In this document: one piece after another, positions 8,861 to 63,051 of the stretch
Layout: each line of letters begins with the position of its first letter
Position numbering within the stretch: position 1 is the first letter of the stretch
Assembly (NCBI RefSeq): GCF_021869535.1
Contig: NW_026262648.1
Location: 2,666,001-2,730,000, forward strand
Origin: Mytilus californianus
Lineage: Eukaryota
Length of the DNA: 64,000 bases
Direction: 5' to 3'
Position numbers and translations under genes: made by a program
Notes under the pieces: model-generated
Databases searched by the model: none
Told to the model about the DNA's origin: nothing
Seen by the model: only the letters and a program-made list of their open reading frames with translations

Positions 8861-8964
8861 ACAACTGTACTACAGACTCCTGACTTGGGATAGGCACATA
8901 AAGAATGTGGCGGAATTAAACATGTCTGTGAGCGCTTAACCCTCCCCTTACCTAGGACAGTGGT
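8861..8964 (-). ncRNA. Putative type-P5 twister ribozyme, family 1, lightly mutated
   Basis: ACCACUG...GGGGAGGG...UAAUUCCGCC-ACAU/AUGU-G-CCUAUCCCAAGUCAGG; A.C mismatch in P4. Confidence 0.6.
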
Positions 8965-9256
8965 GTAACAATTAGTTGTTTTCAATTTCTTGTTAATATA
9001 AAAAGCAATAAAAGAAACACACAAGTATGAGAAAGGGTTAAACTAAGGCATTTATACACACGGGAATGAATGAAATGATTCAGTTGTCAAATCCCGCCGA
9101 AAAAATTACTGATTTACACTAAGAAGTTTCTATACACCGAAATGAATGAAATGATTTCACTGGTCAAATTTCGAAGAAAGAAATTATTGATTGTTTTTTT
9201 GTAAATCACGCACATGTTATTTCATTGTTTAAATCAAATTAACTATAGGTACCTAC

Positions 9257-9319
9257 CTGTAGCTTCAGAGACTTTACTTTTAGAATTCGTCAATACGTCT
9301 TTCGTCATAGGGGACCTGC
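9257..9319 (-). CDS. Gene 1 candidate exon 8: Ser/Thr-rich stalk (RSPMTKDVLTNSKSKVSEATG)
   Basis: 63 nt open, phase 1-1, strong donor G|gtaggt; the acceptor (ttaattaaag) is weak. Confidence 0.55.
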
Positions 9320-9684
9320 CTTTAATTAACATAATGCATATCATATTATCATAAGGGTTTTAGAGAATTCATTTGTAAAGGAAAATATATACAAAAGTGA
9401 CGTATCCTTTTAATCCAGGTCTGATATGCATAAAACCACTTAAGTTAAGATATCCAATCGTAGTACTAATTTATCGTAGGACATGTAGAAAAATCCGTCC
9501 GTTCGGAACAAATCTTAACTTAAGTAGCTTTATGCTCTCTTTAATTTAAAGAAGAAACGTAATTGTAGTCAAAACAAGGTTTTATTTATAAATGATGAAA
9601 GCATGGTATTATATAAACGTATCCAGTATGCTATTCTTGAATAGAAATTTCTACACACCGGAATGAATGTAATTATACGCTTAC

Positions 9685-57796: not shown

Positions 57797-59429
57797 CTTA
57801 AGTATCAATAAGAACATTATGTTGTGACAGGCAAATCTTAGCTGCAAAATAATACGTTCCTTTTTAACTAAACGATAATTTTGGCAAGATTTATAAATTT
57901 GCACTATTAGCACAAAAATATATAGAACGTATTGTATATATAGCTTATAATATATCAAAGGTTTCTTTGTTTCTTTGTTATTTAGAATTGTCAATAGATC
58001 GAAAACATCTTTAAAAAAAATAATGGCATGATCATATTTTTGTGTACTGATACACGTTGTTGTTTTCATTTACATGAAAATGTTTTACAAAAGAATTCTA
58101 AAAATAAAATACAATGTACATGCTTGCAATGCAATTACTAAACGAGATGTTGATGTACGTATTACATGAAGTCTTATGTTTTGTTCACTTATGTTGGAAT
58201 TTAATCAATTTAACAAAGCGTCTTATGTAAAAAGGATCAACGACGTGAAGTCTGGAAGATATGACTTGAAGCAGATGTAAAATACGCTAGCATCATTACA
58301 TTCATGATATAAAAAAGAAAATACCATACAAAGGGTGTCAACAAAAAATCAGAAGTATAAGAACAACAGTCCATGGCAAATAGAAAACGACGAAAAGTGA
58401 AAAAAAACAGTCCACATCACACTTAACAGAAAACTAAATATCGATCAAAACGAGCCCCGCAAAAAACTGGCGTATAATCAGATAATCCTCATTCCGACAG
58501 TGGCATTAATATTTTATTTTATGAAATAAGGAGTAATGGGATATATGTCAATAAGACAGCCTGCAAACAATTTCAGGACCAAAAGGAACATCATAAGGTC
58601 AACAGAAAGTTTTTATCAAAAATGTTAAATGTAAAGCTCTAAATCGTCCAGACAAAATGTAAAATAATTAAACAGCGAAAAACAACGATCTCTCATTAAC
58701 AACACAAACAAATAAACAAACACAAACATTGAAGAATTTTCTTAAATGGGACAGACACATTTGTGATGTAACAATAATTTCCAGAATGCTCAACCTTTCT
58801 TCTTTTATTTCTCATCAATTATATTACCAAAGGTGTAAGTATAAATTCGTCATAAAATGCAGTGCACAAGAGGCGCTTATTTCAACAATACCAACAAACA
58901 CAACGATAAGTGGATAATACTAAATGATAATCTATTAGATTGATTGGTTGTTGTTTTCTAAACGTCAATTAAGATACTAGAAAATGATTTAAGGTACCGA
59001 GAGCTGGCTAAATGTACTTAAAATGTCTTTTTATGAAGTAACGCCTATCCATTGTGCCCTTTATTTGAACAATTGCTGTGACGTCTTTTTATAATTATTT
59101 TCTTAATTATGCCCTTTTATCGATAAGCTTCGATAACCACGCAATTCTCTTAAACTATGCACTGACAAAAACAAGCAATAAGACGATTGAAATCATGATA
59201 AAAATATAAAAAACAAAATCCTACGCACTTGAACGAACAATTAGTTTCCTGACTTGAATTTCGGTTGAATTATTATAATTAGAAATTTAAATGTATTTTA
59301 CAAAATATATATATATGTAAATTTACATTCATTAGATACAAATATGTATTTGGAAGTATACTGTTTAGAAACTGTTGAAATTCCGATTACAAATTCGAAA
59401 GTGTAATAATACCTTTAAAAATATGTGAA

Positions 59430-61075
59430 ATAGCCAAAACAATCACAGAAAACTTTCTGTTCTATGACCAAGATCTATGTGCATTTTCAATAATGGCCGC
59501 TCTTCAACATTAAAGACTAAGATATAATTCATGACTTAAATCTATGTTTTGTAAATCTTGTTTTGCTGCTAATTTTTCTGTCCTTTTCTGTCCATCATCC
59601 ATAGTTCTTGACCAAAATAAAACAAATGAGTAAAAATAGTCATTCAAGGGCAATAACTTTTACAAGAAGTAGGCTTTCAGCTGTATTGACCAATTTGTGG
59701 ATCTTGTCTTACTGATCATGTTTGCTTTCACAGTTTGTCTTTATCTACTATAGTTTTTTGCATAACATATAAAAAAGGTAAAATTCATCATTTCTTTTTA
59801 AATCTATTTAAGTTTTTGTATAATATGCAAAAACTGGATAAAAAAAAGATAATTAAAGGGCAATAACTCCTACACAATATTGACTGATAATTTTGGTCAT
59901 CTTAACAAATGTGTAGAAATTATCCTGTTTTTTTTGTAGGCTGGTAATAGTTTTTCTTTATCTACTGTATGTTTGGCCAAATATACAAAAAAAAATTAAA
60001 AAACGGTGTTTACTTGTCATTTAGAGGCAACAAGTTCAATAAGAATCAACCTACGATTTCGGCAATGTAAACAAATTGAAAGATCTTGTCCTGTTAAATT
60101 TAATTTAAGTTTCTCTAATTTTTTAACTATTTTCACATTTCACAACCGATTGTGAAAACATTGTTCTCCTGACCTCACTAGTGAAATATTTGTTCTCGGC
60201 AAATGATTGGTCGAAATTTAATTATGACGTCAAATTTTCTTGGTTTCTTCTGAATTTAATATTGTGACGTCATGAAAAAAGGCGACCATGCCTGAAGACG
60301 TCACAAATAAAATACTCAACTTTGCAAAGTAAGGATAAAGTCATTAGAGAAGTAGATTCAACCACTATAACTCGTGTATTACGATATTTCTCCACTCTCA
60401 ACAGTTAAACTTTAATTATTTAAAAAGATCGGCAAGCATCGCACTTAAAGTTGAAAAATATCGTAACACATTTTTTACAGTGGTGGAATCTATATTTCTC
60501 TTTATCTGTTATAGTTTCCAAGATAAAAAAAATAAAAAACGCATAAAATTGGTAAAAATCGTCAATTAGGGGCAATAACTTCTAAAAAAAAAGCCGACTC
60601 ACGATTTCAACAATGTTTTGATTTTTCTTATATCATGCGTTGATGAAAGGTTTTACAATCTAGAGCTTCTCTTTATCTATAAAAGTTTTCAAAATAATAT
60701 TCAAAAATACAAAAAAGGGCGATAACTCCTATAAAGAGTCGGCTGACAGTTTTGGTGTAAATGATCAGTAGGTAAATCACCAGATTTATGCCTCTTTAGG
60801 TTATTCTTTAAATAGTGGTTTTTCAAAATTATAAACAAAAGTTTCATTTTCTCCTATATTCTTTTTTTAGCCATGTCGGCAATGTTGGTTAAAATGCAGG
60901 AACATTGGGCACTAGATACCCAATGATGATTGTGGCCACTTTTGGTTCCAATTGCTCCAGTAATTTAAGAGGAGAATATTTTTGTAAACGTTAGCGGAGG
61001 ACAACCACGGCGGACGACAGACACCAAGTGATTAAAATAACGCAGTTTGACCCTTTAGTCAGCTAATTATATAAG
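59430..61075 (+). mobile_element. Old HINE-type element with several decayed core repeats, interrupted at about 60135-60460
   Basis: Recurring AGGGCAATAACT at about 59647, 59857, 60568 and 60716; ends cggacgacagacaccaagtga. Confidence 0.6.
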
Positions 61076-63051
61076 CTGAAAAAGTGAAACGGAAAATCGA
61101 ACTTACGTTTATTAATTTTAAACCTAACATTAACTCTTAAATTCGTCTTAACCTCGTGACTTCAAACTTAAATCTTAGATTTGATTTTTTTATAAGGTAT
61201 CGGCTTTTCTTTTGCTCTTTTTTGTTTTATTAACCCTTCAACGTTTGTATTACGTTTTGGATTTTCAAAAATTATGATGGCTTCGATCTTCACTGAAGAG
61301 ACATTAATTATGGAAATTTGCATCTCGTGCAGTAACATTGGTACTTTTCGTGTTATTAAAGAAAACGAAAGTATCTTTTACATATAAATTTTGCTCATCT
61401 TTCTCAATTCTGTATTCATTTCCGTTGACAATAATCTTGGATGACGAGGTCAACAAGAATGCATGCTTATTATATTGTATAAAATATAAATTGGTAGCCA
61501 AAAGGTTTAATTGATGTGTTTGATTCATTATAGAAAGAGAGTTTGATTCCCGACGGAAAATAAAATTGTTTTAGTCAAAAGTATGTATTTCAGCTTTTTC
61601 CCTTGTGAATTGAAATCAGCAAGTTAGCCAATTCAGAATTAATAAATTTGTGCACAAGGATGACTATTTTGCCTACGTAGTTCTGTATGCATGTGTATGG
61701 AAATATATACCACCTCTCATCTTTCGATTGCTGTAGTTTTTTTAGTGATACATCTTCTGATATTTCAAAATTAGAATATAGTTGCCCCAGCAGAAACTTT
61801 TCTTAAGTTAAAAGAAAAAAATAATTCAATTTTATATCAGTGGAAAAATACTCTTCATTGGTATGTTTGCTCCTTTTGCACTGGGATTATTGATATTTGA
61901 TATGTCTTATCTAACTATAAAAAGTTGACGGAATAAACGTTCCAGAAATATATCTCTCTTGTTTGTGACAAGTATAATGTCATAAAGTTAAACAAACAGT
62001 CTGACACTTAGTTTTGGCTTATTGACTATGTTGCCGCAGGTAAAACGCATGAATATAAAAATAAGGAGACCATGAATATGCGGTACCATTGCCAATGAGA
62101 CAACTATCCACCAAAGTTCAAAAGAAGTGGATGTAAGCCATTAGACAATAGTACGACCTTCAACAATGAGAAAATAAACCATACCGTATAGTCGGCTATA
62201 AAAGAACCCGACATGAAAAAATATGAAACAATTCAATTGAGAACAAAACAATTTACAAAAATCAAATATGACAGACATGCACAAACGAAAACCACTGAAA
62301 TACATGGTCCTAACTTTATACAGGCACATGAAGAAAGGCGGGTTAAAAATGTTTGCTGGCACCATACCCTCCCCTAATCTTGGACAGTGGTGTTACAGTA
62401 CAACATAAGCACAAACTGTAAAATTCAGTTGAAATGGGCTGAACACATCAGATCAATACACAGCAGAAAAACATTAAACAAAAACACAGACCGGACGTGG
62501 CAGGGAATTTATCCCTCACAACAAAAGACACAAAGAACAGATCTGAGAGTACTCGCATTTATTGAAATCTTGTTAAAAACCAATAACAACTTATAAAGAA
62601 AGCATGTATATAAGTTCAAAATATCTATCAGTACACATCCAACAACCAATGGATTTATTGTATAGACGTCATTTACAGTCAGAGAAAAACATAACCAGTT
62701 GGTGCCAAAATAAAAGTATCGACAGATTGTAGAACCGTGAATGTTCATATGTGTATAATATATATATCTAGTATGGTTTTATACATTCCCCATTTCCATT
62801 CTCAATTTTATTTTAATTTACTGATAACGAAATTAATATTTATACCAATAAACAGTGCTGAATTGGTAAGTATGTTCTTCAATTGCATTTACTCTACTTC
62901 TCGTTCAACTCGGACAGATTTAACGTTAAAGATTAGAATTCAGAGAAAATTGGCTTTGTGTAAATCTCATTTAATGTTATATGTATTAATGCAAATATTG
63001 TAAGGTATAAAAATGAATATATTTTCAGATTTTGGAATTTAATTTGTTCAC

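Follow-up and report, generated by a model that had tools for sequence, protein, structure and literature searches.

We analysed a stretch of 64,000 nucleotides (nt) of Mytilus californianus DNA (assembly GCF_021869535.1, contig NW_026262648.1, positions 2,666,001 to 2,730,000; hereafter the window, numbered from its first letter), in which an earlier note had described three families of repeats carrying a twister ribozyme fold at eight sites. The window is AT-rich (~32% G+C) and crowded with interspersed repeats. All eight sites were found, with coordinates exact to the base and the quoted P5 and P3 stems correct, and self-BLAST revealed a ninth copy. The three families exist; they are not free-standing small repeats, however, but the 5'-truncated tails of three lineages of Penelope-like retroelements (PLEs), which belong to the clade Naiad in family 2 and probably also in families 1 and 3. 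Their homology runs into remnants of an open reading frame (ORF). The twister fold has a fixed place in the 3' untranslated region (UTR) of these elements; its core is conserved in intact copies, and its stems P3 and P5 and two associated palindromes covary.

The best preserved copy belongs to family 2 and lies at 51655-51745 (-). It is the only copy of the window with all 31 conserved core positions intact (0/31 differences), whereas the other members of the nine-copy set carry 2-10 substitutions. A covariance model built in this analysis and run without filters over the whole window recovered all nine copies and gave this one 92.5 bits; its minimum free energy is -37.8 (z -3.8). The copy consists of P5 (10 base pairs), P2 GGGG/CCCC, GAGGG, palindrome 1 UGAGAUCUCA, palindrome 2 AAACAUGUUU, UAAC, P3 GCA/UGC and P4 CCUG/CAGG with loop UCCCAAGU, and the predicted cut falls between 51702 and 51701. 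Family 3 is represented by a decayed twister-like fold at 48332-48426 (+; 64 bits) with three core differences (GUCCGAAG, one P2 mismatch and a shortened GAGG), one bulge in its P5 and UUGGAUCCAA as palindrome 1.

Family 1 accounts for the remaining copies. Its longest fragment, 49156-50392 (+), comprises a decayed C-terminal reverse transcriptase (RT) ORF (49156 to ~49660), the 3' UTR, a twister remnant at 50044-50148 (+; 3 core differences, 75 bits) and a 250-nt tail down to a terminus shared with the other family 1 copies. Tail fragments with twister remnants lie at 8609-8970 (-; remnant 8861-8964 (-), 4 core differences), at 16050-16436 (+; remnant 16069-16178 (+), 4 differences, with ORF remnants upstream at ~15200-15700), at 20795-21390 (-; remnant 21046-21152 (-), 2 differences, 72.9 bits, palindromes GGCGCGCC and AAACUAGUUU), at 36044-36431 (+; remnant 36077-36180 (+), 8 differences) and at 62052-62781 (-; remnant 62291-62391 (-), 6 differences). 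The ninth copy, beyond the list of the earlier note, is the family 1 fragment 47142-47510 (-), whose twister remnant (47225-47328 (-), 55.7 bits) has 10 core differences. The covariance model alone added a tenth, strongly decayed remnant outside its training set at 55417-55496 (+; 28.9 bits, E ~2e-6) and faint remnants at 27274-27337 (-) and 22945-22992 (+).

The stems differ between families. P5 reads CAGG/CCUG plus ACCACUG/CAGUGGU in family 1, GGCUAGAGG/CCUCUAGCC in family 2 and GACCAAACAAA/UUUGUUGGUC in family 3, and P3 is ACAU/AUGU versus GCA/UGC. The sequence UAACCCCGCC occurs in the window above chance (26 matches at no more than two mismatches vs 11.6 +/- 3.3 in shuffles, with 26 reached in 0/100 shuffles), and GUCCCAAG by itself showed no enrichment in the window. 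Pattern matches at 6558-6628 and 17503 were rejected as further copies.

Anatomy and covariation of the twister fold

In each of the three lineages the fold is 90-105 nt long and circularly permuted. Its parts follow the order of a type-P5 permutation: the P5 5' arm, a short linker, the P2 3' strand (GGGG), GAGGG, 21 nt, U/AAC, the P2 5' strand (CCCC), GCC, the P3 hairpin, P4 (CCUG...CAGG) with loop UCCCAAGU, and the P5 3' arm. A scan of metagenome contigs for the exact core pattern revealed 28 loci (named L with a number below), 22 of them low-GC with homologous elements and six of them chance bacterial matches.

Rfam scans of the whole 64-kb window and of 3.6-kb stretches revealed no twister, neither at the gathering score nor by E-value; matches to the Twister-P5 family (RF02684) came only from short stretches of ~120 nt. 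Twister-P5 was the top Rfam match on a 116-nt stretch, at 51666-51732 (-), with 23.1 bits and an E-value of 0.003 against a gathering score of 37.6, and it matched L013, an intact family 1 relative on a metagenome contig, with 23.4 bits and an E-value of 0.0025. An Rfam search with the family 3 copy gave no match. Both Twister-P5 alignments matched all conserved consensus bases (GAGGG, UAA, GC and GUCCCAAG) as well as P2 and P4; the score is low because the P1 hairpin of the model remains unmatched and P3 is counted as an insertion. The core bases UAA, GC(C), GAGGG and, in loop L4, GUCCCAAG are complete in 51655-51745, L013, L017, L002 and L014.

For the core alignment (without P5), nine window copies were combined with 16 metagenome copies, and pairs were counted for the twister structure and the two palindromes. 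In these 25 sequences the stems P2 (GGGG/CCCC) and P4 (CCUG/CAGG) pair in 86-87% of cells. The complementarity of the double pseudoknot, described for twister between L4 and L1 and between L4 and L2 (PMC6154101), is likewise present at sequence level: CCC with GGG for L4-L1 (T1) in 81% of cells and GC with G(U/C) for L4-L2 (T2) in 92%. Over the whole structure, 84.8% of cells pair, vs 27-50% after the partners were slid by 1-3 columns; covariation scores 0.225 vs 0.03-0.08, and 44 cells are altered on both sides vs 8-13 in the slid registers. None of 500 shuffles reached the observed covariation score, paired-cell share or both-side count, while two measures that count pairs or pair types did not rise above the shuffles (248 and 271 of 500). 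Two-sided changes were found in three pairs of P3 (AU/GC, CG/UA and UA/AU), in palindrome 1 (GC/AU in 13 vs 11 sequences, GC/UA, and AU/CG at the centre) and in palindrome 2 (AU/CG/UA at the centre). In T2, GU alternates with GC, so that one side varies. P2 and P4 showed no two-sided variation, which is little informative since the search pattern had already set their 5' strands.

Across lineages, MAFFT yielded no common register for the P5 arms, and duplex energies were used instead. Six unrelated arm pairs gave -10.5 to -23.4 kcal/mol with their own partner against a cross-family mean of -8.8, and a single one of the 720 partner permutations, the true pairing, was as good as the observed total. 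The earlier note had argued from stems that change sequence yet keep pairing that selection acts on RNA structure; the pair counts and the P5 permutation test bear this out and support selection on an RNA fold of the twister type.

The place of P1 is taken by other elements. The 21 nt between GAGGG and UAA cannot make a hairpin, and a cis P1 was ruled out because the nucleotides that follow GAGGG do not pair with those that precede UAA. In all lineages two perfect palindromes of 6-10 nt lie between GAGGG and the cleavage site. Palindrome 1 begins 1-2 nt past GAGGG and occurs in the versions UGAGAUCUCA, UGAGCGCUCA, UGGGAUCCCA, GGCGCGCC, GGCGCC and UUGGAUCCAA; palindrome 2 ends on the scissile U and occurs as AAACAUGUUU, AAACUAGUUU, AACCGGUU and AAUCGAUU. 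Their central dinucleotides are self-complementary even when changed. This would be unneeded in a hairpin loop; it fits the pairing of two RNA molecules. When the isolated palindrome segment was cofolded, the dimer was favoured over two monomers by a ddG of -7 to -17 kcal/mol. Palindromic helices are also known from the mini-hammerheads of other PLEs, whose helix III is palindromic and which have been proposed to be active as dimers within tandem transcripts (PMC4209133). As twister cleavage has been reported to proceed without P1 (PMC6154101), activity of a monomer is also conceivable.

The parent element

The family 1 copies end at one common 3' terminus (...CCACATCTTCTTATTTTTAT) ~250 nt downstream of the twister, whereas their 5' ends vary. 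At least five further fragments consist of the tail only, being broken off downstream of the twister and ending at the same terminus (38466-38739 (+), for example; also 19127-19294, 23717-23884, 29950-30026 and 37384-37460). Variable 5' ends together with a common 3' end identify these copies as 5'-truncated insertions of a retroelement. Upstream of the twister at 50044, homology runs on into the decayed ORF end described above, and the same ORF end recurs at 15200-15700, at 40400-41000 (+), where this remnant of the same element type ends before the twister, and, for family 3, at 47495-48080. The family 3 part upstream of its twister (47495-48331 (+)) comprises decayed C-terminal ORF remnants and 3' UTR.

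This upstream part contains a tandem duplication of ~387 nt at 47600-48340 (47600-47999 and 47990-48340) that covers the ORF end and 3' UTR; its two units meet at a GACCRAA microhomology of the ORF with the P5 5' arm, and the junction resembles a P5 hairpin without the twister core. Readings of the tandem as retrozyme-like unit boundaries, or as a deletion of the core between the P5 arms, were rejected, as the start of the unit is homologous to the ORF and the join is the microhomology.

A HMMER search with the C-terminal ORF piece of the window revealed only fragments of no more than 220 amino acids (aa), and one encoding contig measured 1.1 kb. The protein searches probably returned fragments only because in-frame TGA codons split the gene calls. 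A near full-length parent of family 2 was found in three marine metagenome contigs (L021, L014 and L002; in L021 at 519-3626). Its ORF consists of pieces of 424 and 480 aa and shorter N-terminal pieces, which are separated by four in-frame TGA codons at identical positions in all three loci and end in a TAA stop. By motif reading, a GIY-YIG motif (..YVGETGRYLSKRTQEH) lies near the N-terminus of all three, and a CxC motif (..MSCNCSN..) lies between the endonuclease (EN) and RT parts of L021. RT motifs are found in the last 480 aa, directly before the TAA stop, and the PADLOC RT profile matched the C-terminal piece with an E-value of 1.3e-4. One TGA lies eight residues downstream of DKA (DKAANNIIIV-TGA) and another just before GIY-YIG (..YLLT-TGA-NKPGC..); the same two selenocysteine codon positions have been reported for all four selenocysteine-coding Naiad families, two from clam and two from spider (Craig et al. 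2021, PMC8557442). A match to the selenocysteine insertion sequence (SECIS) model SECIS_1 lies 58 nt past the stop (30.9 bits, E 4e-4; gathering score 35).

In this parent the twister P5 starts 317 nt past the stop, and the element ends ~235 nt after P5. Across the families, the distance from the ORF stop to the twister is ~320-390 nt for families 1 and 2 and ~255 nt for family 3; in families 1 and 2 a further ~240-250 nt separate the twister from the 3' end of the element. The first 125 nt of L021 are the tail end of another copy, directly before the 5' end of the element, and this layout indicates a putative tandem or pseudo-long terminal repeat (pseudo-LTR) arrangement. A search of the L021 3' UTR revealed no hammerhead. 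Craig et al. 2021 (PMC8557442) likewise described no canonical hammerhead in Naiads, and they reported tandem and 5'-truncated inserts as typical of PLEs together with an insertion bias towards A/T microsatellites.

The family 2 copy of the window is 92% identical to L021 3674-4124 and is therefore the tail of such an element, truncated after the SECIS. The fragment of this selenocysteine-coding Naiad extends over 51407-51894 (-), begins past the SECIS region and ends in A/T-rich DNA; it adjoins ATATATAGAATATAG, and reads run into its AT-rich flanks. For family 1, L027, L028 and L013 provide the link to the same kind of ORF, with RT motifs for family 1a in L028; the window fragment 49156-50392 matches L027 at 67% and L028 at 66% across ORF and tail. 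Of the ORF, the family 1 and family 3 copies of the window retain only remnants of its C-terminal end, with homology to the corresponding part of the ORFs in L021, L027 and L028; no EN or CxC part was seen in these two lineages.

In L004, L012 and L019 and in the faint window remnants at 22945-22992 and 27274-27337, homology is lost just upstream of palindrome 2 or of the cleavage site and kept downstream. A pile-up of 5' truncations near the cleavage site would agree with cleaved RNA being reverse-transcribed, or with a strong stop of the RT; the cases are too few to judge.

With 10-12 traces in 64 kb, a read depth in the hundreds and bivalve Naiads reported to number in the tens of thousands (Craig et al. 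2021, PMC8557442), a very large genome-wide copy number is plausible.

RNA reads and the possible function of the fold

To the family 2 tail (51380-51920) we placed the reads of four raw-read RNA runs at 90% likeness; the libraries are not end-specific, and most of the transcribed copies may be dead. The tail is near-identical in runs of several coded organisms. It is transcribed, with a depth in the hundreds in both orientations. Many reads leave the element at 51416-51418 into divergent AT-rich flanks, which marks its 3' end, and reads continue upstream of 51894 with one consensus, which marks the truncated 5' end of this copy. Among the variants listed, the common ones inside the twister affect only wobble-keeping P5 positions (51658 and 51743), the P3 loop (51689) and the linker that joins the two palindromes (51712, plus an insertion at 51708). 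In all four runs, a dip of ~25% in one orientation was seen in the bin just 5' of the predicted cut, which is weak evidence. Six reads of one run (X21) contain a joint from 51759 to 51421 that connects the 3' end of the element to a point 14 nt upstream of P5, indicating 339-nt head-to-tail units with twister and tail in one organism. In other runs, joins back to 51427/51428 from 51510 and 51588 were observed.

We consider it likely that the sites of the earlier note belong to the 3' UTR of three Naiad-type PLE lineages, whose copies here are truncated at the 5' end and mostly dead, and that each lineage has a permuted twister fold that would self-cleave in the master copies. The RNA of a master copy would be cut at U/A, probably only when two copies pair via their palindromes, for instance the two pseudo-LTR copies of a tandem transcript. 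In this way, tandem or read-through transcripts would be cut down to unit length, a role that has also been proposed for dimeric mini-hammerheads in other clades of PLEs. A more far-reaching proposal, which we put forward tentatively and hold to be possible but doubtful, is that Naiads have replaced the hammerhead of other PLEs by a P1-less twister active only when two copies pair via the covarying palindromes; cleavage would then be coupled to tandem transcripts and might yield twister-based, retrozyme-like circular RNAs in bivalves.

Several observations weigh against the reading as Naiad tails with a self-cleaving twister. The Rfam scores stay far below the gathering score (23 vs 37.6), and no cis P1 is possible. 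No pile-up of molecule ends was detected anywhere on the tail in the four RNA runs at the threshold of the tool, including the predicted cut 51702|51701. Inserted genomic copies hold the twister and the 250-nt tail in one piece, so the reverse-transcribed RNAs were uncut there, which argues against efficient cleavage by a monomer. Few lineages are represented (three in the window), so that the cell counts overstate the number of independent events, and the metagenome loci were picked by a pattern that fixes the core, so that core conservation, P2 and P4 are not independent there. Searches of Pfam, NCBIfam and PDB sequences with the ORFs revealed nothing significant, and the assignment of GIY-YIG and CxC rests on motif reading.

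The main rival explanation is a non-catalytic conserved structure of the 3' UTR, either derived from or mimicking a twister, that would serve the Naiad RT or its ribonucleoprotein (RNP) as a signal for recognition, dimerisation or packaging, with the palindromes as dimer-linkage sites as in retroviral dimer initiation sites. The missing cis P1, the sub-threshold Rfam scores, the lack of an end pile-up at the predicted cut in the four RNA runs and the uncut twister and tail of inserted copies all agree with it, and the palindromes strongly favour intermolecular duplexes. A mere scaffold would, however, need none of the catalytic-core bases (UAA, GCC, GAGGG and GUCCCAAG), which are exact in intact copies of at least three lineages with fully diverged stems, and P1 has been reported to be unnecessary for cleavage (PMC6154101). 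We regard a purely structural role as rather improbable. It is very unlikely that the sites are independent, non-autonomous short twister elements, SINE-like (short interspersed nuclear element) or retrozyme-like and spread by cleaved or circular RNA, instead of truncated tails: many copies consist of the tail only, the read joint from 51759 to 51421 implies a 339-nt head-to-tail unit with twister, and the mussel genome holds hammerhead retrozymes of 350-390 nt (PMC7229834), but the homology of the longer copies continues unbroken into the remnants of the RT C-terminal ORF, the same tail stands behind intact ORFs in L021, L014 and L002, and variable 5' ends with one common 3' end are the mark left by 5' truncation; PLEs typically insert in tandem or in 5'-truncated form (PMC8557442). 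It is extremely improbable that the likeness to twister arose by chance in an ordinary interspersed repeat whose RNA structure is under no constraint. Chance would account for the blank Rfam results at the gathering score and in the whole-window E-value scans and for the missing enrichment of GUCCCAAG alone; yet Twister-P5 is the top match in two lineages (E ~0.003), covariation lies far above the slid and shuffled controls, and each of the six unrelated P5 versions pairs with its own partner.

Other repeats and comparison with known systems

Some further repeats of the window were recorded. A tandem array with units of ~400 and 540 nt extends over 32626-35332, with single copies at 46523-46613 and 61278-61368. 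A conserved stretch in it shows a hammerhead-like core (..CUGAAGAG..helix..CGAAA..), and the unit size recalls the 350-390-nt hammerhead retrozymes of mussel (PMC7229834); Rfam revealed no hammerhead match in one unit of the array or in the whole window. A 125-aa ORF (..STCRAGSAYPSGAPE..) at 48660-49037 (-) lies in another abundant interspersed repeat that adjoins a family 1 element, with related stretches at 28745, 63920 and 3435. Two direct repeats of 144 nt, 99% identical and 2092 nt apart (40258-40401 and 42350-42493), flank the region just after the decayed Naiad ORF end and may represent a young insertion with terminal repeats. Short tandem arrays unrelated to the twister repeats lie at 15008-15428 (109 nt x 3.9), 18832-19025 (33 nt x 5.6) and 63499-63889 (100 nt x 3.8).

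Within an incomplete coverage of the literature, we found no report that links twister to PLEs. According to Craig et al. 2021 (PMC8557442), Naiads are the most abundant PLEs of many invertebrates and thrive without the hammerhead of almost all other PLE clades (most Chlamys elements also lack it), and this was used to question the importance of the ribozyme. Naiads would cease to be an exception if they carry a conserved twister fold in the corresponding region. Two unrelated classes of ribozyme would then have been recruited to one task, and a need of PLE replication for RNA self-processing would become more credible. Since the motifs score below the Rfam thresholds, tens of thousands of bivalve copies would be unannotated.

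The fold resembles Twister-P5 (RF02684, clan CL00120; Roth et al. 2014, summarised in PMC6154101) in the order of P2, GAGGG, UAA, GC(C) and P4 with its loop GUCCCAAG, in the T1 and T2 complementarity, in the presence of the optional P3 and in being open at P5. It differs in that two covarying palindromes of 6-10 nt replace the P1 hairpin and that T2 is often G-U instead of G-C; it is set in the tail of a retroelement, scores 23 bits vs a gathering score of 37.6 and is a putative ribozyme. Should the proposed role of the palindromes be correct, this would be the first twister in nature to work as a dimer.

The closest parallel in arrangement is offered by the minimal hammerheads in pseudo-LTRs of PLEs (Cervera and de la Pena 2014, PMC4209133). 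There, too, a small self-cleaving-ribozyme motif lies in the terminal repeat or 3' region of a PLE, the helix beside the cleavage site is reduced and palindromic, which suggests action as a dimer in tandem transcripts, and the sequences are very variable with compensatory changes. The ribozyme class, however, is hammerhead there and twister here, and the clade here is Naiad, with an N-terminal endonuclease and reported to lack canonical hammerheads.

With the Naiad clade, including its selenocysteine-coding clam families (Craig et al. 2021, PMC8557442), our elements share, in the family 2 parent, the N-terminal GIY-YIG, the CxC motif and the C-terminal RT, a UGA before GIY-YIG and another 8 aa after DKA, a SECIS after the stop and a body of ~4 kb, and further the tandem and 5'-truncated copies, the A/T-rich insertion sites and probably a very high copy number in bivalves. 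Unlike in that report, which describes no canonical hammerhead and makes no mention of twister, a twister fold is fixed here in the 3' UTR.

The known link between twister and a retrotransposon concerns the 5' end of Perere-3 in Schistosoma, where a ribozyme of the same class is tied to the life cycle of the element. Perere-3 is LINE-like (long interspersed nuclear element), uses the target-site duplication as P1 and has cleavage shown, whereas here a putative ribozyme lies in a PLE 3' UTR, without a cis P1. A conserved twister fold in Naiads would provide the second documented link between twister and retrotransposition. Animal non-LTR retrozymes (PMC7229834; bioRxiv 10.64898/2026.07.22.740005) are alike in consisting of short tandem ribozyme units that derive from the termini of PLEs. 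Here, tandem units of 339 nt are suggested by one read joint; the family 3 tandem of the window is a microhomology duplication with no ribozyme cores at its junctions. Retrozymes carry hammerheads, not a twister fold, and are known as abundant circular RNAs.

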